This document shows, piece by piece, positions 9,213 through 63,470 of a stretch of DNA of 64,000 bases. The stretch's first letter is position 1. Each line of letters opens with the position of its first letter. Position numbers and translations under genes: made by a program. The notes under the pieces were generated by a model. The model was given only the letters and a program-made list of their open reading frames with translations, searched no databases and was not told the origin of the DNA. This DNA comes from Octopus bimaculoides (taxonomy: Eukaryota), in NCBI RefSeq assembly GCF_001194135.2, contig NC_068984.1:128166842-128230841 (forward strand). Direction: 5' to 3'.

Positions 9213-10113
9213 GTTGTTACATATGCTAATATTTAATGTCATTCTATATATAAAATGACATGGGTCATACTTGAACATTAGTATGTCAATGTCTCTGACA
9301 TTATTTCTTTGTTAATGACTTCATTATCAGTTTAGCTAATTGCTACAAGACAGTCACGGCTAATTTGCTATTTTAGAATTTGAAACCCTTTAGCAAACTT
9401 TAACAGATTTCTTGGTTAGGATGTATTCATAGAACAAATTAACTCTTAATATAGAAGTCCCCATAAAAAATGGATCCCACTATATTTATTCCTTCATAAC
9501 CAAGAATCGCATTTAACTTTGAGAAAAAATATTTTCAACCAAAGTCTCTAATTTATTATTATTTTGTGGTCCTTTTCTCTAGTATCTGTACAAATTGTCT
9601 CTACTTGTATGTCCATTGTTCTTTAATGTAACTCTAGTAACACTAACGACTTGTAGGTATGAGGTATTTTGTTATGCAACGTTAATATTCCATTAAGTAT
9701 ATTAAACGTTTTTATAAGTAAACACCATGTTCTATTGCATTAGCAGTGTTCTTTTACATTATTTGTTAAGGTTATCTCTACAGATACTCTATAGAAATTA
9801 TTGCCAGTCCTGATTTTTGTTACGACATTTCATATACGACAGGTCAGATGTAAACAAACAATGAGATCAAAGATGAAAAAAGGGTAATGGGTGTATATGC
9901 CATATTTTGAGGCTTTTTGCCCTTTCATCAGCTCCCATTCAACCCTTTAATTATCCTTGAACACAGTGCTTAAATAGCCACTGTATACAACAGTGTTTGG
10001 TTATTGGATATACCAATTTTACATATTAAACACATTCCTGGAAGCTGTACATAAATACTAGTGACTTGTAGGTATGTGGTATTTTGTTATGCAATTATAA
10101 TATACTATATACT

Positions 10114-10519
10114 AGGTGCAGGAGTGGCTGTGTGGTAAGTAGCTTGCTTACCAATCACATGGTTCTGGGTTCAGTCCCACTGCGTGGCACCTTGGGCAAG
10201 TGTCTTCTACTGTAGTCTCGGGCCGACCAAAGCCTTGTGAGTGGATTTGGTAGACGGAAACTGAAAGAAGCCCGTCGTATATATGTATAATATATATGTG
10301 TATATGTTTGTGTATCTGTGTTTGTCCCCCCAGCATTGCTTGACAACCGATGCTGGTGTGTTTACGTCCCCGTAACTTAGCGGTTCGGCAAAAAGCGACC
10401 GATATAATAAGTACTAGGCTTCCAAAGAATAAGTCCTGGGGTCGATTTGCTCAACTAAAGGTGGTGCTCCAGCATGGCTGCAGTCAAATGACTGAAACAA
10501 GTAAAAGAGTAAAAAAGTA
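10114..10519 (+). mobile_element. tRNA-derived SINE, family B (internal TA/TG microsatellite, (AAGAGT)-like tail)
   Basis: A box TGGCTGTGTGG, B box GGGTTCAGTCC, central gccttgtgagtggatttggtagacggaaactgaaagaagcccgtc. Confidence 0.85.
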
Positions 10520-10650
10520 TATTAAACATATTTATAAGTCAATACTGCGTTCTAATGTAAAAGCACACCGCTAACACAGTAGAACGTGGTGTTGACTTAT
10601 AAAAGCGTTTGATATACTTTATAGTATATTAAATGTTTTTATAAGTATAA

Positions 10651-13511: not shown

Positions 13512-13920
13512 TCTTTTATCTTTTATTTGTTTCACTCAGCAGACTGTGGCCATGCTGGGGCACCGTGTTGAAGAATTTTAGTTGAATGAATCAACCCCAG
13601 TACTTATTTTTCTTCTTTTTAAATTTTGGTACTTATTCTACCAGTCTCTTTTGCAGAACCACTAAGTTATGGGGATGTAAACACACCAACACCGATTGTC
13701 AAGCGGTGATGAGGGACAAATACAGAAACACACACACACACACATAGATTTATACATACACGATGGACTTCTTTCAGTTTCCCTCAACCAAATCGACTCA
13801 CAAGGTTTTGGTTGACCCAAGACTATAGTAGAAGACACTTGCCCAGAGTGTCACACAGTGGGACAGAACCCAGAACCATGTGGTTAGGAAGCAACAAACT
13901 TCTTATCACACAGCCACACC
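13512..13920 (-). mobile_element. SINE family B copy (diverged)
   Basis: Reverse complement of 10114-10519. Confidence 0.75.
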
Positions 13921-14166: not shown

Positions 14167-15002
14167 AAGCGAAATCGGGATAGTACCTGTGCCCAGCGTC
14201 GCATTTCTAGCACTTGTGCCCGTGACATGTGTAAGGATTTTCGAGCGAGATCGTTGCCAGTGCCCCTGGACTGGCTCTTGTGCGAGTGGCACATAAAATA
14301 CACCATTTTGAGCGTGGCCGTTGCCAGTACCGCCTGACTGGCCTTCGTAGGATTTTCGAGCGAGATTGTTGCCAGTGCCCCTGGACTGGCTTTTGTGTGG
14401 GTGGCACATAAAATACACCATTTTGAGCATGGCCGTTGCCAGTACCACCTGACTGGCCTTCGTAGGATTTTCGAGCGAGATCGTTGCCAGTGCCCCTGGA
14501 CTGGCTNNNNNNNNNNNNNNNNNNNNNNNNNNNNNNNNNNNNNNNNNNNNNNNNNNNNNNNNNNNNNNNNNNNNNNNNNNNNNNNNNNNNNNNNNNNNNN
14601 NNNNNNNNNNNNNNNNNNNNNNNNNNNNNNNNNNNNNNNNNNNNNNNNNNNNNNNNNNNNNNNNNNATTTCTAGCACTTGTGCCCGTGACATGTGTAAGG
14701 ATTTTCGAGCGAGATCGTTGCCAGTGCCCCTGGACTGGCTCTTGTGCGAGTGGCACATAAAATACACCATTTTGAGCGTGGCCGTTGCCAGTACCGCCTG
14801 ACTGGCCTTCGTACGGGTGACACGTAAAAGCACCCACTACACTCTCTGAGTGGTTGGCGTTAGGAAGGGCATCCAGCTGTAGAAACTCTGCCAAATCAGA
14901 TTGGAGCCTGGTGTTGCCATCCAGTTTCACCAGTCCTCAGTCAAATTGTCCAACCCATGCTAGCATGGAAAGCGGACGTTAAACGATGATGATGATGATG
15001 AT
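14167..15002 (+). mobile_element. RTE 3' UTR fragment with internal 115-bp tandem units and a (GAT)n tail
   Basis: Same 3' UTR as 15715-15816 and 57831-58275. Unit starts at 14234, 14349 and 14464. Confidence 0.85.
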
Positions 15003-15816: not shown

Positions 15817-16371
15817 NNNNNNNNNNNNNNNNNNNNNNNNNNNNNNNNNNNNNNNNNNNNNNNNNNNNNNNNNNNNNNNNNNNNNNNNNNNNNNNNNNNN
15901 NNNNNNNNNNNNNNNNNNNNNNNNNNNNNNNNNNNNNNNNNNNNNNNNNNNNNNNNNNNNNNNNNNNNNNNNNNNNNNNNNNNNNNNNNNNNNNNNNNNN
16001 NNNNNNNNNNNNNNNNNNNNNNNNNNNNNNNNNNNNNNNNNNNNNNNNNNNNNNNNNNNNNNNNNNNNNNNNNNNNNNNNNNNNNNNNNNNNNNNNNNNN
16101 NNNNNNNNNNNNNNNNNNNNNNNNNNNNNNNNNNNNNNNNNNNNNNNNNNNNNNNNNNNNNNNNNNNNNNNNNNNNNNNNNNNNNNNNNNNNNNNNNNNN
16201 NNNNNNNNNNNNNNNNNNNNNNNNNNNNNNNNNNNNNNNNNNNNNNNNNNNNNNNNNNNNNNNNNNNNNNNNNNNNNNNNNNNNNNNNNNNNNNNNNNNN
16301 NNNNNNNNNNNNNNNNNNNNNNNNNNNNNNNNNNNNNNNNNNNNNNNNNNNNNNNNNNNNNNNNNNNNNNN

Positions 16372-24577: not shown

Positions 24578-24687
24578 ACTCTCTCTCTCTCTCNNNNNNN
24601 NNNNNNNNNNNNNNNNNNNNNNNNNNNNNNNNNNNNNNNNNNNNNNNNNNNNNNNNNNNNNNNNNNNNNNNNNNNNNNNNNNNNNNN

Positions 24688-38165: not shown

Positions 38166-38264
38166 TTAGTCAGTCCCCTCGTCGTCCATGTCATCTTTGC
38201 TGCCGTCTCCAGCTCCGTCAGATTCTATGTCATCTGGGTTGGAAGATTTGTTACGACGATCAGC
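38166..38264 (-). CDS. HMGA: Last coding exon of the HMGA-like gene, acidic C-terminal tail
   Basis: Strong acceptor tattttctttttgcAG. Encodes ADRRNKSSNPDDIESDGAGDGSKDDMDDEGTD* (TAA at 38166-38168). It is GC-richer than the flanks, and an acidic tail is an HMGA hallmark. Confidence 0.75.
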   Translation of the reverse strand, partial: ADRRNKSSNPDDIESDGAGDGSKDDMDDEGTD

Positions 38265-41087: not shown

Positions 41088-41120
41088 CGTTTTGCTGTGC
41101 TGTTTCTTCATGAGATCTTT
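41088..41120 (-). CDS. HMGA: 33-nt linker exon of the HMGA-like gene (KDLMKKQHSKT)
   Basis: Acceptor gttatgttttccAG, donor ACG|GTgagt, phase 0/0. Same size as the 11-aa spacer exon 4 of vertebrate HMGA2. Confidence 0.7.
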
Positions 41121-44245: not shown

Positions 44246-45229
44246 ACCCTTTCTTTCCTTCCCTGAGTGCTTTTTAATGCTTTGCATGTATCACATCCTC
44301 ACGTTTTTTTTCTTGTTGATTTTTCATTTTTTGGGGATTNNNNNNNNNNATAATTGAGATTCCGTAGAATTAGGTACTTAAATTGAGGCACAAGGCAGTT
44401 CGGTAAAGTTCGTGCAGCTCGAAGTTAGATGAAAAAGCAAAGTTGTGCTAAAAAAAATGGTTTATTCTTTATGTTGGAAATCTATATGGTTGGCTGCTTT
44501 TGAAGGGAGCAGTTTATTTCAAATTGGTGTAATGTTTTCATTAATCGATTAAATAGAGCCGCTTGAAACGGCTGTAATGCACTGATACTTGGACATCCTT
44601 GTTACTTATTTGCTATATATATATGGCCTTGCAGGGTGGCATCATTCGAAGGCTAAAATGATGCAAAGCATATTGTGAACAGTGATATATAACATCTGAT
44701 AGTCTGCTTGGACAGATAATCACATTATATATATATATATATATGTGTGTGTGTATATGTATATGTGTACATGTATATATATATACATATACACAGGTAT
44801 AATAATAATTATTATCATTATATTTGTATAGTAAGGGGTGAGCTGATAGTATTGTTAGCATGCTGAGAAAAATGCTTATCAGCATTTCGTTCATCATTAT
44901 GTTCTGAGTTCAAATTCTGCTGAGGTTGACTTTGCCTTTCATCCTTTCAGGATCCAAAAAATAAATACCAGTTGAGCACTGGGATCGATGTAATTGACTA
45001 ATCCCCTTCCCCTGAAAAATGATCACCTTGTGCCAAAATTTGAAACCATTATGATATCCCTACAGCAAACAAATCAGATAAATCCAATAATGGACAATAA
45101 TGTTTCAAATCAGACCAAAAATGTTTCTACATTCATTTGTTTTGGCAAGGAAGCTTTTTAGAAGTATGTTCAAAGTGTTTTCATTGCCCCACAAAAATGT
45201 TAGTGGGTGCAAGCACACCCCTAGTAGCA

Positions 45230-53680: not shown

Positions 53681-54551
53681 AACTGTCTGTAGATTTGTTC
53701 TTGGACAGTTGTAAAAACTAATTACTATTTTACCAAAAGAAGGTAAAAAATGACCTTTCTGACATGACATCAGTAAAATGGTTTTGATGACAAGATTGTG
53801 CAGTATATTGCAACTGCTGTGTAGAGATACTGTTAGATAGATTAGCTAAAACATTCTTATTATCATTATCAAGGCAATATAAGAGCCTTTACATGATCGC
53901 TCAGCCTGCAAGAAATGGCAGCTAAATATCTCTCAAGTCACACCCTACCAATCTTAAAAAGGAAGGATACATGGGAATGTAGCTGTAGATACACTGTCTG
54001 AAAATATAATAAGATAAAGTGGTCACAGGTGGAACGTCTTTGATTTATTAGTCTGTTCCATTAGGGCTGGACTGGCACTAGCAACACCAAAAATAACAAA
54101 CACCAGCATTTGAAACAGTTTTCTGGCTTAACATAGATGAGAGAATTCGAATCAACTGGAAATGAGATAAACTAAAAAAAAAGCTTATTACCTTTACACT
54201 GTGATACCCAAGGGAAACAGTAAAGAGAATGAACTTTACAATAAGAGATGAAAGTGGTAACAGACAAATGAAATATAAATCGTATTAGTGATGAGAGTTG
54301 ATGAAAAGAAATTAGTATTAATGAGTAGAGAGAATACTGTATTTAGTTAATACCAGATTAGTAAAACATTAACAGACAGACACAATTCATACATACTAAA
54401 TATTACAAGCATGTAAACACACACACAGACTGACATCCACAAGTATACACATACACACACACACACACACACAGGTACTTTAATTAAAAAACATGCCAGT
54501 AAATTCTTCTTCAAGCCCCTTTGCTGTAGTTCTACAACAGAAGTGCATAGA

Positions 54552-55388
54552 TTAATTCTTTAGTTTTAGTTTACTCTCTAAAGCCTTTTTCTTCAATCGC
54601 ATGAGATCCATTTTCATTTGATGCCGCTCTTCTTCCATTGCCATTCTTTGTTGATGTTCTTGTTGGTGCAGTTCGAAAATCTGTCTTTCAAATGGACTCA
54701 GTACAATATTGAGTTGTTCGTAAGATTGGCACACACTTCCAGATTGTTTTCCTAAAGCATGGTTATAGATGCTGACACTGTTGTCGGTAATTCTTGACGA
54801 AATCATAGAAGCAGCCACTTGAACAGCTGATCTGATGTTTGGTAGGCATGGCTGAGTACTCATATGCATGTTATGACATTTGTCATCCAAGTGTCTGGCA
54901 GCGGAACAGTGGTGTCTGCAAACTACATTAGTTGCTGCCATATCTCCTGATCCTGCTGTCATATGGCGCATCCGGTGACACTTCAACATTTTCATTGAAC
55001 AGTTGTTAGGAGAAAGCTGACCGCAAGATCAAACTATGTGCATAGCACCTGTCATGTCTTTAGACTGATTAGCTGATGTGAAGCCGTCAGCTTGGCACTC
55101 AAATGGAAAATTCTTGGGTGTAGATTGTGATGGTAAAGAGGAGAGGTGATGTAAATTGTTAGTAGAAGCAGACAATAGAGAAGATGGAGAGGAAGAAGTA
55201 GTAGAAGAAAGAGGTACAGTGGCAGGAGAAGAAAGACCTGAGGTAGTAGTGGTAGTAATAGTAGTAGTGGTAGTAGCACCAGTGGTATGAGAGGAAAGAC
55301 TAGTAGTGCTATCAACAGCAGCATGAGAATGATGTGAAGAGCAGGGTTGAGAAACATTCTGAAGCTGTCTATGAGGGGAATGAGCAGC
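54552..55388 (-). CDS. 3' part of the large candidate terminal exon: S/T-rich low-complexity region, in-frame TGA at 55029-55031, then a C/H-rich segment and a coiled-coil C-terminus
   Basis: One frame runs 119 codons, TGA, then 158 codons ending FERQIFELHQQEHQQRMAMEEERHQMKMDLMRLKKKALESKLKLKN*. ATTAAA lies 68 nt after the final stop (54479-54484), followed by (GT)n. Confidence 0.55.
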
Positions 55389-55690
55389 NNNNNNNNNNNN
55401 NNNNNNNNNNNNNNNNNNNNNNNNNNNNNNNNNNNNNNNNNNNNNNNNNNNNNNNNNNNNNNNNNNNNNNNNNNNNNNNNNNNNNNNNNNNNNNNNNNNN
55501 NNNNNNNNNNNNNNNNNNNNNNNNNNNNNNNNNNNNNNNNNNNNNNNNNNNNNNNNNNNNNNNNNNNNNNNNNNNNNNNNNNNNNNNNNNNNNNNNNNNN
55601 NNNNNNNNNNNNNNNNNNNNNNNNNNNNNNNNNNNNNNNNNNNNNNNNNNNNNNNNNNNNNNNNNNNNNNNNNNNNNNNNNNNNNNNNNN

Positions 55691-56407
55691 CCCACAACTT
55701 TTCCTTCTGTAATTAACAGGACTTTGAAGCTGATTCATTATGGCAGAGTTCTTAGGACTGGGTAGGATTTTCTGACCCTGATTGTTTGGAAAATGTATAG
55801 ATTTAGAATTCAGTTTTGTCGAGTCATGTTTCTTATGTACTTGACATTTGCTATTCGTTGATGTTTTAATTTTTCTTGAGTCAGTAAGTTCAGTTCTTTT
55901 CTTACTGTAATTAGAAATAACTGAACTTTGATTGACTTTAAGTTTAGACGAAATCTGAGGCATCACAGAATTCTTCATTTTCTTTAAACTGTTGTTTCTT
56001 GAATTGGCAAATTTATTATTTACTCTTTTAGGGTTATTTGAACTATCAGTTTGAACATTTTGGAGTTGGGTAGGATTTGCATGAAGATCATGAATGATTC
56101 TTTTTGACCATTTATGTTGAGACTTCTTAGAAACAGTTTTGTTTTTCTGACCCCTAGACGAAATCTGAGGCATCAAAGAATTCTTCATTTTCTTTAAACT
56201 GTTGTTTTTTGAATTGGCAAATTTATTATTTACTCTTTTAGGGTTATTCGAACTATCAGTTTGAACATTTTCGAGTTGGGTAGGATTTGCATGAAGATCA
56301 TGAATGATTCTCTTTGACCATTTATGTTGAGACTTCTTAGAAACAGTTTTGATTTTCTGACCCTTAAGCAATGCCTTGTGCTTTACAGGCCTCAAAATTT
56401 CCTGAAA
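55691..56407 (-). CDS. 5' part of a large candidate exon in the HMGA intron (K/S/N-rich, 239 codons up to the N-gap)
   Basis: Very strong acceptor ttttctttttgtcttcgtttctctcttcatttcAG, with a tandem second AG 6 nt downstream in the same frame. Phase 0, compatible with the 63402 donor. Stop-free for 717 nt in AT-rich DNA and contains an in-frame 210-bp duplication. Confidence 0.65.
55945..56364. repeat. 210-bp in-frame tandem duplication (2 x 70 aa)
   Basis: Units 55945-56154 and 56155-56364 are nearly identical; the peptide GQK.KTVSKKSQHKW...MPQISS occurs twice. Confidence 0.95.
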
Positions 56408-56578
56408 CTGAAATGAAGAGAGAAACGAAGACAAAAAAGAAAAACAGATTTACCACAAATGGAAAAATAAGTGTAGCTTTTGGAGAACAAATTAAACAGA
56501 GCTGTCAATGAATTAGATTTATAGGAATGTGTGTGTATGTGTGTGTGTGTGTATTATACATACATACATATACACACA

Positions 56579-56805: not shown

Positions 56806-57227
56806 TACTCTTTTACTCTTTTACTCTTTTACTTGTTTCAGTCTTTTGACTGTGGCCATGCTGGAGCACCGCCTTTTAGTCGAGCAAATCGACCCCAGGA
56901 CTTATTCTTTAGAAGCCTAGTACTTATTCTATCGGTCTCTTTTGCCGAACCGCTAAGTTACGGGGACATAAAATACACCAGCATCGGTTGTCAAGCGATG
57001 TTGGGGGGACAAGCACACACATACAAACATACACACACACATACATATATATATACATATATACGACGGGCTTCTTTCAGTTTCCGTCTACCAAATCCAC
57101 TCACAAGGCTTTGGTCGGCCCGAGGCTATAGTAGAAAACACTTGCCCAAGATGCCGCGCAGTGGGACTGAACCCGGGACCATGTGGTTGGTAAGCTAGCT
57201 ACTTACCACACAGCCACTCCTACGCCT
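56806..57227 (-). mobile_element. SINE family B copy
   Basis: Full-length reverse complement. Confidence 0.9.
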
Positions 57228-57280
57228 ATGTCGTATGGATATATATTTTATTTATTGGTCACAATACATGTATTAAAAAA

Positions 57281-58855: not shown

Positions 58856-59330
58856 TACTCTTTTACTCTTTCACTTGTTTCAGTCATCCGACTGCGGCCA
58901 TGCTNNNNNNNNNNNNNNNNNNNNNNNNNNNNNNNNNNNNNNNNNNNNNNNNNNNNNNNNNNNNNNNNNNNNNNNNNNNNNNNNNNNNNNNNNNNNNNNN
59001 NNNNNNNNNNNNNNNNNNNNNNNNNNNNNNNNNNNNNNNNNNNNNNNNNNNNNNNNNNNNNNNNNNNNNNNNNNNNNNNNNNNNNNNNNNNNNNNNNNNN
59101 NNNNNNNNNNNNNNNNNNNNNNNNNNNNNNNNNNNNNNNNNNNNNNNNAACATACACACATATATACGACAGGCTTCTTTCAGTTTCCGTCTACCAAATC
59201 CACTCACAAGGCTTTGGTCGGCCCGAGGCTATAGTAGAAGACACATGCCCAAGGTGCCACGCAGTGGGACAGAACCCGGAACCATGTAGTTCGTAAGCAA
59301 GCTACTTATCACACAGCCACTCCTATGCCT
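58856..59330 (-). mobile_element. SINE family B copy spanning an N-gap
   Basis: Both ends are visible. Confidence 0.8.
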
Positions 59331-59361: not shown

Positions 59362-59810
59362 GTAGGCACAAGGCCTGAAATTTTAGGGGGAAAATGCTAG
59401 TTGATTATATCCACCACTGAGCTCAACTGGTACTTATCTTATTGACTCTGGAAGGATAAAAAGCAGAATCAACTTTGGCAGAATTTAAACTCAAAGGTAA
59501 AACCAGAAAAAATATTGCTAAGCATTTTTCCTGATGTACTAAGATTCTACCATCTTTCCACCTTCACACCAGCTTAATAATGGTTTCAAATTTAAGCACA
59601 TGGCCAGTAATTTCAGGTGAGGGGATAAGTGAGTAACAATGGCCCCAGTAATAAATTGGTACTCATTTTATCGAGCCTGAAAGGTCAAAGGTAAAGTCAA
59701 CCCTGGCGGAATTTGAACTCAGAACAGAAAGACAGACAAAATGCCACTAAACATTTTGCCTGGTGTGCCAACAATTCTGCCAACTCACTGCCCAACACCA
59801 GCTTAATAAC
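59362..59810 (-). mobile_element. Two adjacent SINE family C copies
   Basis: About 59362-59575 and 59581-59810. Other copies at about 33640-33818 (-), 34073-34285 (+), 44835-45052 (+), 48812-49010 (-) and 60525-60732 (+). Confidence 0.75.
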
Positions 59811-60203
59811 TCTTTTACTTGTTTCAGTCATTTCACTGCGGCCATGCTGGAGCACCGCCTTTAGTCGAGCAAATCGACCCCAGGACTTATTCTTTGTAAG
59901 CCTAGTACTTATTCTATTGGTCTCTTTTTGCCGAACTGCTAAGTTACGGGGACGTAAACACACCAGCATCAGTTGTCAAGCGATGGTGGGGGGGGGGGAC
60001 AAACACAGACACAAACATACACACACACATACATACATATATATGACAGGCTTCTTTGAGTTTCCGCCTACCAAATCCACTCACAAGGCTTTGGCCGGCC
60101 CGAGGCTATAGTGGAAGACACTTGCCCAAGGTGCCACGCAGTGGGACTGAACCCGGAACCATGTGGTTCGTAAGCAAGCTACTTACCACACAGCCACTCC
60201 TAC
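59809..60203 (-). mobile_element. SINE family B copy
   Basis: Full-length reverse complement. Further partial copies at about 4590-4765, 30335-30622, 32875-33112, 43800-44120, 49705-49905 and 62150-62285. Confidence 0.9.
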
Positions 60204-63200
60204 TAAGACAGTTATTTTACTAAATAATTCATTATTTTCAAAATTCATTGAAAATAAGGCATGAGAAAAAAGGTAACAAAAGGGTTAAATATATGGGTCA
60301 AATCAACTGTGTAGCTACCATTTACAACACAAATAATTAATGACTTTCACAGGAGTCAAATATATTTCAGTACAGACCCTGGACTACTTTAAAATCTGTA
60401 TTGTTAACAATAGCCATTTCAAAATCTGTAGTGGTTAGCTCACAATAGCCACTTTAAAGTCTGTATCCACTATTTAACAATTTATAAAGTATTTGCTAAC
60501 AATATTTCAAAATTTGAAAGTGGTAAACTGGCATAATTGTTAGCAAGCCAAGCAAAATGCTTAGCAGTATTTTATTTATTGTTACACTCTGAGTTCAAAT
60601 GCTGCTGAGGTCGACTTTGTCTTTCATCACTTCAGGGGTTGTTAAAATAAGTACCAGTTGAGTACCGGGGTTGATGTAATCAACTTATCCCCACCCCAAA
60701 ACTGCTGGCCTTGTGCCAAAATTTGAAACCGGTATTTCAAAAGTTGATAAGAATTTAGAAAAGAATCAGTATGTGTTGCTAGTTAAGCTGCTTCAATTCA
60801 GAATTTATAGTATTTCATTAAAAAGTTTATAAATAAACGATTTTTTTTCTTATATTGAAAATTTTATTATACATAATCAATAGACTGAATAATCAATTTC
60901 AGTGATTAAATTTTTTAAATATGTAAACTAATTTATATCTTATGACTAGCATATTTGTCATATGTGTATGTGTGTGTGCTTGAGAGAGAGAGAGAGAGAG
61001 AGAGAGTGAATGCATGTCTGTACCACTGTCATGATAACAGACAAGGACAGTTTCCACCCAAACATCCATACACCAAATTTTTCAGACATCCTATTGAAAT
61101 AACTCTTATCATACCCTCGATGATGTCCTTTTTTTTTTCTTTCTGGTATCAGCCATTGATACTACAGCCCTCTTGGAGCATCACTTTCAAGAGTGTTTTT
61201 TATTATTTCTTTTAAATAAAAAGTAACTCAGTGTTTTGTTTTGTGTTTTTTTTTTTGGTATGAAGAAAGATAACTCAGGTAGGTATGACTTCTACAAGGT
61301 GTTTTTATTTGATACATTGTTTTTAATTCATTCCATACTGATACACACACACACATACTGGGCTTCTGCAGTTTCTATCTACAAAATTTTATTCACAGAA
61401 CATTGGCCAACTTCAGGCAATGTATAACAGAAGACACTTTGCAATTTTCTGTGCAATGGTATCAAACCTGGAACCATATGGTTCCAGGTTGCCTGCTAAT
61501 AATTGTAAAAGACAAATAAAAGTAACACACCAGAAACGCATTTCATAAACATCAAATGCAACACAAAGAATATGCCCACATCCACAGCCTCTCATGATCC
61601 CTATATCCACCATCTCTATGTTCCCATGCTGGTGTGTGCTGAATGAGTCTTCAATATATTTTTCATATGTGAAGCCCCATTCTTATCAGATCTACGTTCT
61701 TTTACACAAGCTGTTCTTGTTGTACTCTAACCATTTGCACCATCTTTCAATAATTATTTACCCAGCATGCATTATTCATTAGCATATATTACATGCAATA
61801 AGGTCAATGTTTTGAAGAAAGGTATCAGACTGCAAAGCCTTCATCTTAGTTATCACACTTTCATAGTGTTGCCTTTGTGATAGATGCAGTCCATCATCAT
61901 CATCATCATCATCAACAATTAATGTCTCACTTTCCCATGTTTGCATGAATGAGATGGAATTTGTTGAAGCAGATTTTTCTATGGCCAGATCCCCTTCCTA
62001 GTGCCAACTATAGAGCCTTGTTTCCAAGCAAGGTTAATATTTTCTCATAGCTACACATTTCATAGAAGACTGGAAACAAATAACCTCACTTATATAACAA
62101 TGAGGCTCATTTACAACCATCACGATATCTAGAAAGGGTACATACACACGCACACATGGTGGGCTTCTTTCAGTTTCCATCTACCTAATCCACTCACAAT
62201 GCTTTGGTTGATCCAAGGCTTTAGAAGACAATTGCCCAAGGTGCATGCAGTGGGACTGAACCCAAAACCACATGGTTGGCAAGCAATCTAAATGTATAGT
62301 TAAAAGTACCCAAATGTAGAATAGAATGAGATTGACAATGATTATAATAATGATGATTTCTTTTTTTAGTTGTTGATGATGATGATGATGATTAGTAATC
62401 ATAACATATATTGAGCACATAACTTGTATTTAATATTTTACCCTTAGTCAATAACTATTTATATTTCAGTCTCTTAAATGATTCTACCAACAGCACCACT
62501 ACCACCATCATAATCAAACACATCTTTCAACACAACTTCAGTCAAACATTTCATTAGGTACGGCTTTAATCAAATACATATTGAACACCAACCTTTAAAA
62601 GAAGACTGTCAAACACATACATCAAACACACATAAACACTTTTAAACACAATTAGGACTATTAACCAGTTTAAAATTATAAGGGTAAAGAGAAACTCAAT
62701 ACACTGTATTCCTAGCAATACAAATCCTTATTGTCTTTTATAGAAGGAACAGCATCCATACTGGCTCATCTCATTTCTCTACATTACATTTTCATCAACC
62801 AAAACGGAGCCTCTTCTATGTGTTCACTCAACAGACTAGAAATAACAGCTGAATCTCCCTAAAAAAATGCCCTATTTGTTTTAGGAAAGGAAAGATTCAT
62901 TGGATATAATGTGGTTCTAGATTCACTGTCTGATCAAAAGACAAGAGATCATGGCTGGAATATCTTTGGTCAGGACTTAAACAACGACTTCCATTGATAT
63001 TCTAGCTATTTTAAAATTATTGCTGGCTTCTTCAACAATATTTACAAGGCACAAATCAAACATTGCAAACATTGTGACATCATTCAATAAAATAAATATA
63101 AATAAGATTGAAACCAAAATAGGAAACAACATCATCAATGTGATTATGGATATAATCATTACAGTGTAATCTGACTCCATTAGGTCTCAAATATACAAAA

Positions 63201-63401: not shown

Positions 63402-63470
63402 CTTAGAAGGTTTTTTGTTTTTACTTCCTTTTGGTCGACCCCGTGCTCTCTTCGGTTTTGGTTCTTCAGA
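63402..63470 (-). CDS. HMGA: AT-hook exon of an HMGA-like (HMGI-C/HMG-I/Y) gene
   Basis: Minus-strand acceptor ttctttatgatatttccAG and donor AAG|GTtggt; 69 nt, phase 0/0. Encodes [23 protein letters not shown], closely matching the second AT-hook of vertebrate HMGA2 ([21 protein letters not shown]). Confidence 0.85.

Follow-up and report, generated by a model that had tools for sequence, protein, structure and literature searches.

The window analyzed here, 64,000 nucleotides (nt) of the Octopus bimaculoides genome, carries on its reverse strand, to which the exons, exon parts and flanking signals given below in descending coordinates belong, a long open reading frame (ORF) at 56407..54552, inside a long intron of a gene of the HMGA family. 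A probability of roughly 0.75 is given to the reading that octopods have in this region a conserved alternative last exon of their HMGA gene, as indicated by synteny, purifying selection, conservation of splice sites and two independent gene models in other octopods. The predicted exon has what would mark an alternative last exon, namely a donor shared with the classical isoform, phase-compatible acceptors conserved in five genomes and a stop codon (TAA) of its own. That one locus encodes both a small HMGA and a long AT-hook/coiled-coil protein had been proposed from the letters of this DNA alone (hereafter the sequence-only reading), and the proposal was borne out by comparative genomics and by public gene models. 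The sequences compared were those of the window, Octopus vulgaris (L006), Octopus sinensis, a third octopod represented by a Logan contig (L001) and Argonauta hians (L003); three Logan samples of the third octopod (SRR11869384, SRR11869385 and SRR11869391) differed from each other at only 3 sites.

The upstream partner of the long exon would be HMGA exon 2 (63470..63402), which is common to both predicted isoforms and encodes SEEPKPKRARGRPKGSKNKKPSK, with the second AT-hook, before a phase-0 donor (AAG/gt, the slash marking the splice boundary) that follows 63402. Approximately 7 kb downstream of exon 2, a conserved, intronic polypyrimidine tract with tandem 3' splice sites (56475..56408; cag/TTTCAG/) leads to candidate acceptors at 56407 and 56401 (...ttcatttcag/TTTCAG/GAAATT), both of which are in frame with the exon 2 donor. 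From the first acceptor the frame was open for 239 codons (56407..55691) and, beyond an assembly gap, for another 279 codons (55388..54552) ending with the TAA at 54554..54552. The other two frames of the same stretch contained 24 and 39 stops, and the open frame thus extends far beyond chance. It opens at most 17 codons upstream of the acceptor AG, and no ATG near its 5' end was conserved across all species compared. The absence of a conserved ATG, together with conservation and openness from the acceptor onward, fits a 3' exon that continues the frame of a coding exon upstream of it rather than a stand-alone gene. Scans of the window for RNA genes gave no Rfam or tRNA match.

The assembly gap (55690..55389) is written as 302 N and, 302 mod 3 being 2, the two halves of the exon are out of frame across it. 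Between the same anchors, exactly 240 nt (80 codons) were found in both O. vulgaris (approximately 91% identical) and the third octopod (approximately 84% identical), so that both halves form one reading frame in these relatives; the written length of the gap is evidently a mere estimate. The segment that it hides includes, in the orthologues, YRRKSCGLCDQ (CxxC) and SLPxxRRSxRI, which are among the better-conserved motifs. Upstream of the gap, the window contains an in-frame tandem duplication (56363..55945) of 2 x 210 bp (2 x 70 codons) with 97% identity between copies and with 5 of the 6 differences altering an amino acid. About 70 of the visible codons are thus a duplicated copy of a segment that is single-copy in O. 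vulgaris and in the third octopod, either through a recent lineage-specific expansion or through an assembly effect near the gap. The sequence-only reading, with about 500 visible coding codons plus a gap, was largely correct but made the exon more continuous than it is, since it took no account of an in-frame TGA (considered below), of the two halves being out of frame as written or of the approximately 70 duplicated codons.

Uninterrupted orthologous ORFs were noted in O. vulgaris (L006 43913-45541; 542 codons, translated pyrimidine tract included), O. sinensis, the third octopod and Argonauta (L003 19118-20710). The long ORF was single-copy and syntenic in all five genomes, and it was seen to lie downstream of exon 2 and upstream of the small-isoform linker exon in O. 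vulgaris and Argonauta, where the available locus covers both. A first protein search returned a 508-residue Logan ORF (P0001) and a 566-residue A. hians protein (P0002; GAB1598210.1 / GAB1599031.1), in which two AT-hook exons are followed, at ...KNKKPSK/RRFRRVKYN..., by the orthologous long exon. The RefSeq protein XP_029635809.1 of O. sinensis (P0011, 580 residues) reads MADVAAEQ...KRKRGRPRKLKTDQ / SEEPKPKRARGRPKGSKNKKPSK / FQEILRPVKYK...KLKLKN and maps to three coding-sequence (CDS) exons on the O. sinensis chromosome, which are exon 1, exon 2 and the long exon. Its second junction, KKPSK/FQEILRP, corresponds exactly to 63402->56407 in the window; the sequence-only reading had paired a phase-0 acceptor at 56407 with the donor of the AT-hook exon, and both the phase of that donor and the O. 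sinensis junction were as predicted. XP_029635809.1 and GAB1598210.1 / GAB1599031.1 are orthologues of the predicted product, with the same three-exon CDS, junction region and C-terminus, and are uninterrupted, whereas the window has the gap, the TGA and the extra 70-codon duplication.

All three of these entries are labelled 'probable serine/threonine-protein kinase dyrk2'. Since no kinase domain was found in P0011 or P0002 by hmmscan against Pfam, the name is a low-complexity artefact. The long product is therefore already in databases but wrongly named, and no paper on it was found; searches of the literature for octopus HMGA or for the 'dyrk2' entry returned nothing relevant. Annotation of A. 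hians was performed with GINGER, which combines ab initio, RNA sequencing and homology evidence and for which the homology inputs included proteins of O. vulgaris and O. bimaculoides (PMC12682272). The proteins retrieved for this locus from these two input species are without the long form, and the Argonauta model thus owes nothing to the RefSeq pipeline either. In version 1.0 of the A. hians assembly, the whole 30-kb HMGA region is present twice (L002, BAAFZT010000006.1; L003, BAAFZT010000002.1), with 99.8% identity and near the ends of two sequences, probably as an unpurged haplotig rather than a gene duplication.

Evidence of purifying selection came from comparisons of greater depth. Between the window and the third octopod, the ratio of nonsynonymous to synonymous substitution rates (dN/dS, omega) was 0.64 and that of a frame-shifted control was 0.61; this close comparison being uninformative, the deeper comparison with Argonauta was used. 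For O. vulgaris versus Argonauta, omega was 0.34 overall and fell to 0.15 in the part with the Cys/His cluster and to 0.12 across the C-terminal 97 codons; O. vulgaris versus the third octopod gave 0.10 in these last codons, for which the range of values was 0.10-0.16. An invariant block, NIVLSPFE.QIFELH, lies in this conserved C-terminal part. Insertions and deletions between the window and the third octopod were all frame-preserving inside the exon but not in its flanks. Conservation starts right at the acceptor, the region of which is the best-conserved non-coding DNA nearby, with 5 mismatches in 105 aligned bases relative to the third octopod (compared with a divergence of 0.156 in the 3' flank) and 81% identity to Argonauta over 100 nt. 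An in-frame AG is kept in each of the five genomes: the third octopod retains the first, Argonauta retains the second, and the window, O. vulgaris and O. sinensis retain both. Judged from these alignments, the long ORF is a real, conserved coding exon under purifying selection.

Several observations weigh against use of this exon by the HMGA gene. The proteins retrieved for the locus from O. vulgaris and O. bimaculoides are of the short form only, and O. bimaculoides has a separate 147-residue hypothetical protein (P0009) for the ORF that follows the TGA. Both long-form gene models could be chiefly ab initio joins of the long ORF to the nearest phase-compatible exons. Close pairs of species gave high omega (0.6-1.0) in the N-terminal parts of the ORF, with similar values in frame-shifted controls, and no canonical polyadenylation (poly(A)) hexamer was conserved within 700 nt past the stop. 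Finally, the ORF in this window carries a TGA.

The TGA (55031..55029) is in frame and was seen in the window only. The codon at this position is AGA (Arg) in O. vulgaris and in all three samples of the third octopod, the residue in the O. sinensis protein is Arg, and Argonauta has AAG (Lys). Because the TGA precedes the best-conserved C-terminal 158 codons, which include the predicted coil, the window genome as written would not encode a coiled-coil chimera. Removal of the TGA with a micro-intron was considered and rejected, the sole GT..AG pair around it spanning 18 nt. Rescue of the O. bimaculoides UGA as UGG by adenosine-to-inosine editing is considered very unlikely, given that a G precedes the adenosine on its 5' side and that ADARs disfavour this context.

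A real TGA in O. bimaculoides, with a long isoform truncated by approximately 158 residues or an exon that is decaying, is a distinct possibility to which we give somewhat less than an even chance; it would be compatible with an alternative last exon of HMGA and would concern this genome only. Such a reading draws on the window-only change from A to T relative to the AGA of three other octopods and on the pattern of unique codon changes polarised with the third octopod as outgroup. Thus, the ratio of synonymous to nonsynonymous changes after the stop was 1:8 in the window lineage versus 7:2 in O. vulgaris (Fisher p = 0.015), whereas before the stop it was the same in both (5:15 each), which weakly hints that the TGA is real and that constraint on the C-terminal part is relaxed in the window lineage. 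These counts are small, however, and no excess was seen with Argonauta as outgroup, for which few post-stop codons could be polarised (1:0 in the window versus 4:4 in O. vulgaris). The 158 post-stop codons also contain neither a second stop nor a frameshift, and in an assembly with many gaps a base error or a heterozygous variant is possible.

It was also considered that the long ORF is a separate gene nested in the HMGA intron, with a promoter of its own and perhaps a small 5' exon, and is not spliced to the AT-hook exons. This alternative, which we regard as improbable, could call on the existence of the separate 147-residue UniRef protein, the sequence of which is identical to the post-stop ORF of the window; that model is simply the ORF past the TGA, and XP_029635809.1 belongs to the same cluster. 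The splice between exon 2 and the long exon is inferred here from gene models and comparative data, and no splicing at the acceptor is seen in the Logan contigs L001, L004 and L005, of either DNA or RNA origin, which continue from the exon into the intron. Against a nested gene, the start of the ORF and its vicinity lack a conserved ATG, and conservation begins exactly at the conserved polypyrimidine/AG acceptor. In Argonauta, moreover, the interval between exon 2 and the long exon is only about 1.5 kb and contains no other conserved segment, and two independent annotations link the ORF to HMGA exons.

Derivation of the ORF from the coding sequence of a transposon or retrogene, either domesticated or in decay and perhaps of a Harbinger or Myb/SANT-related kind, might be suggested by its length and lack of introns within an intron rich in interspersed repeats and by the likeness of the coil to Myb/SANT-like proteins to which the sequence-only reading pointed, but is scarcely credible for a single-copy sequence, syntenic in five genomes, with only chance-level matches in Pfam, no relative in the Protein Data Bank (PDB), matches to its C-terminal profile among 1.84 billion proteins that comprise octopods and one spurious repeat protein, and whole-protein profile matches elsewhere that involve the AT-hooks only.

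For the short product of the locus, a protein search retrieved XP_014783342.1, an O. bimaculoides protein of 96 residues named 'HMGI-C isoform X2', residues 31-96 of which match exactly the window exons 63470..63402, 41120..41088 and 38264..38166. The product of exon 2 is identical to residues 31-53 of both XP_014783342.1 and XP_029635809.1, and the DNA of this exon is 80% conserved in Argonauta. Its AT-hook in the window, KRARGRPKGSKNK, contains the R-G-R-P core; the hook of exon 1, an exon that lies outside the window, is KRKRGRPRK in XP_014783342.1. The Pfam AT_hook match was scored at 14.5 bits, under the cut-off of 17.4, and scores below cut-off are usual for this model of only 13 residues. 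The linker exon (41120..41088), approximately 22 kb from exon 2, has 33 nt or 11 codons (KDLMKKQHSKT), is in phase 0 at both ends and is 88% identical to Argonauta. The terminal exon (38264..38166) encodes the acidic tail of the small isoform, ADRRNKSSNPDDIESDGAGDGSKDDMDDEGTD, with 12 D+E versus 4 K+R, and then a stop; the linker and acidic-tail exons are both conserved and colinear in Argonauta.

HMGI-C of the coelacanth Latimeria was matched with 60% identity across 54% of the query (E = 7e-4), the shortness of the proteins accounting for the weakness of the match, and PKRxRGRPKGSKNKKPSK is common to this protein and the octopus small HMGA. The locus and its small isoform show the features of the HMGA family, namely hooks, an acidic tail at about 100 residues, the exon plan and similarity beyond RGRP. 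An annotated O. vulgaris protein (P0006) skips the 33-nt linker exon, although the DNA of this exon is conserved as far as Argonauta, and the linker is probably a cassette exon. The same protein begins with an N-terminal extension of 18 residues, METDGQNRAHGAEKVCVE, and may thus have another first exon or another start.

The long exon, 1.6-1.8 kb in length, encodes a tail of approximately 530 residues. As assembled in the window, its parts are a Lys/Arg-rich, disordered N-terminal part (56407..55691), a Ser/Thr-rich low-complexity part (55388..55032), a Cys/His-rich cluster (55001..54873) with invariant C, C, H, C, C and H positions and, in the most conserved part of the exon, a C-terminal amphipathic helix of 46 residues that is a candidate coiled coil (54695..54558). 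In the O. sinensis orthologue, the corresponding segments are a basic part of 169 residues (37 K+R, 6 D+E), a CxxC/RRSxRI segment of 96 residues (18 K+R, 4 D+E), a Ser/Thr-rich stretch of 112 residues (44 S+T), a Cys/His cluster of 53 residues (6 C, 7 H) and a conserved C-terminal end of 97 residues (16 K+R, 11 D+E). The Cys/His cluster may bind metal. An AlphaFold2 model of the C-terminal 158 residues, built with three sequences, showed the last 46 residues as one helix with a predicted local distance difference test score (pLDDT) of 80-97; mean pLDDT was 49.9 and the rest of the model was not confident. In the second half of this final helix, 4-3-4-3 hydrophobic spacing was noted by eye, and a short coiled coil at the C-terminus is plausible but unproven. 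Thus, the coiled-coil end described in the sequence-only reading corresponds to a confident helix, although one that lies behind the TGA in the window.

Searches for relatives of the tail were confined in their yield to octopods. Pfam scans of three ORF pieces and of full orthologues gave chance-level matches only, with no domain otherwise at E <= 1, and a search of PDB sequences with the C-terminal profile gave no match. In a full HMMER scan of the 158-residue C-terminal profile against 1.84 billion representative proteins, octopod copies and one spurious repeat protein (P0010) were the only matches, and the resemblance of the coil to Myb/SANT-like (Harbinger-derived) proteins found no backing in Pfam, the PDB or any relative outside octopods. 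Word-indexed searches, for which the window ORF and an alignment of three species served as queries, retrieved octopod orthologues, including that of Argonauta, but no relative in squid, Nautilus or another mollusc. When a profile of the whole protein was used, the sole matches outside octopods were to frog 'chromosomal protein D1-like' proteins, through the AT-hooks alone. As far as the available libraries show, the tail appears to be restricted to octopods.

Taken as an alternative last exon, the long exon would operate as follows. Transcription would begin outside the window, at the HMGA promoter, and the transcripts would include exon 1 and exon 2 with one AT-hook each. By one route, the donor of exon 2 (63402) would be spliced to one of the intronic acceptors, 56407 or 56401, with an end of the transcript downstream of 54552 and a predicted product of approximately 580-600 residues that consists of two AT-hooks, a basic disordered region, the CxxC/RRSxRI segment, the Ser/Thr-rich stretch, the Cys/His cluster and the amphipathic helix. 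By the other route, splicing would bypass the long exon and join exon 2 to the linker exon (41120..41088), approximately 15 kb beyond it, and then to the acidic-tail exon (38264..38166), giving the classical HMGA of 96 residues. In the long form, a basic tail that includes a probable self-association helix would thereby take the place of an acidic tail of autoinhibitory type, and the protein would probably be a binder of AT-rich chromatin with higher avidity and, possibly, the ability to bridge DNA. In this assembly, the long ORF as written is broken by the gap of estimated length and by the TGA, which would remove the conserved C-terminal 158 residues.

A bolder proposal, which we put forward tentatively and consider rather unlikely as a whole, is that octopods have fixed in evolution what arises by accident in human tumours, namely a combination of HMGA hooks and a lineage-restricted foreign tail instead of the acidic one, with a possible metal-binding Cys/His cluster and a probably dimerising helix, as a DNA-bridging factor that is made from the same promoter by choice of last exon, and that O. 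bimaculoides is a natural C-terminal truncation mutant of this factor.

HMGA proteins are classical architectural chromatin factors, and loss or replacement of the acidic tail is the hallmark of HMGA2-driven benign tumours. The octopod gene resembles vertebrate HMGA2 in its layout, in which each AT-hook has an exon to itself and the hook exons precede a very long intron, a linker exon of 11 codons and an acidic-tail exon. Its second hook is almost the same as in coelacanth HMGI-C (P0008); unlike HMGA2, it has two AT-hook exons rather than three. As in HMGA2 variants and tumour fusions, the hooks would be kept and the acidic tail replaced by sequence in or beyond the long intron. Intron-3 tails of vertebrate HMGA2 are short and unconserved, and tumour fusions are somatic. 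The octopod exon, in contrast, has approximately 530 codons, is under purifying selection across octopods and has conserved motifs of its own. No sequence similarity between the octopod tail and any vertebrate protein was found in the searches made. The HMGA2 gene plan has been described as five exons with an 11-residue exon 4 and a large intron 3 (PMC11291832). The same source states that HMGA2 isoforms with a replaced tail exist and refers to Hauke et al. 2002 on a new exon in intron 3 (PMC11291832). The sequence-only reading had also pointed to isoforms with AT-hooks joined to intron-derived terminal exons.

Proteins of the Drosophila D1-like and AHDC1/AKNA types share with the predicted product a long, largely disordered, nuclear character and AT-hooks as the only recognisable DNA-binding elements. 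They differ from it in that no homology extends beyond the AT-hook and in that they are not isoforms of an HMGA gene.

If the long exon is indeed joined to the HMGA hooks, a conserved and selected HMGA with an exchanged tail would show that a 'fusion-like' design has a normal use in a large clade of animals, and would provide an evolutionary handle on the effect of tail exchange. Each of the retrieved octopus annotations gives one of two products of the locus, and the long product of O. bimaculoides is reduced to a fragment. These one-product annotations and the three misnamed entries would mislead any count of isoforms, or of expression, of HMGA in cephalopods.

At the 3' end, ATTAAA (54484..54479) and (GT)10 (54472..54453) are present downstream of the TAA, as the sequence-only reading had noted. 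The ATTAAA is not conserved and is specific to the window, with a 1-bp deletion in O. vulgaris and O. sinensis and a substitution in the third octopod. About 800 bp past the stop (53724-54551) could be aligned in the four Octopus-type sequences, with a divergence of 0.156 to the third octopod and approximately 8% to O. vulgaris. This divergence resembles that of the fast-evolving coding part, while the alignment with Argonauta ends sharply at the stop codon. Such a pattern fits a long 3' untranslated region but is not proof of one.

Five more assembly gaps were noted in the window (14507-14666, 15817-16371, 24594-24687, 44340-44349 and 58905-59148), the last of which sits in the intron between AT-hook exon 2 and the long exon. 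An interspersed repeat of approximately 400 bp occurs at 56814-57232, 59809-60201, 10113-10520 and 13512-13920, so that one copy lies approximately 400 bp upstream of the long-exon acceptor; the O. vulgaris locus, 91 kb in length, contains over 10 copies. A stretch of approximately 100 bp recurs at 57066-57175, 59169-59267, 60046-60155, 62162-62244 and 10177-10275. Neither of these repeats gave a tRNA or Rfam match in scans of the window. The shorter stretch is 80-85% identical to Argonauta L003 4162-4269, 13850-13941 and 24134-24243 and looks like an old, conserved element of the short interspersed nuclear element (SINE) type.

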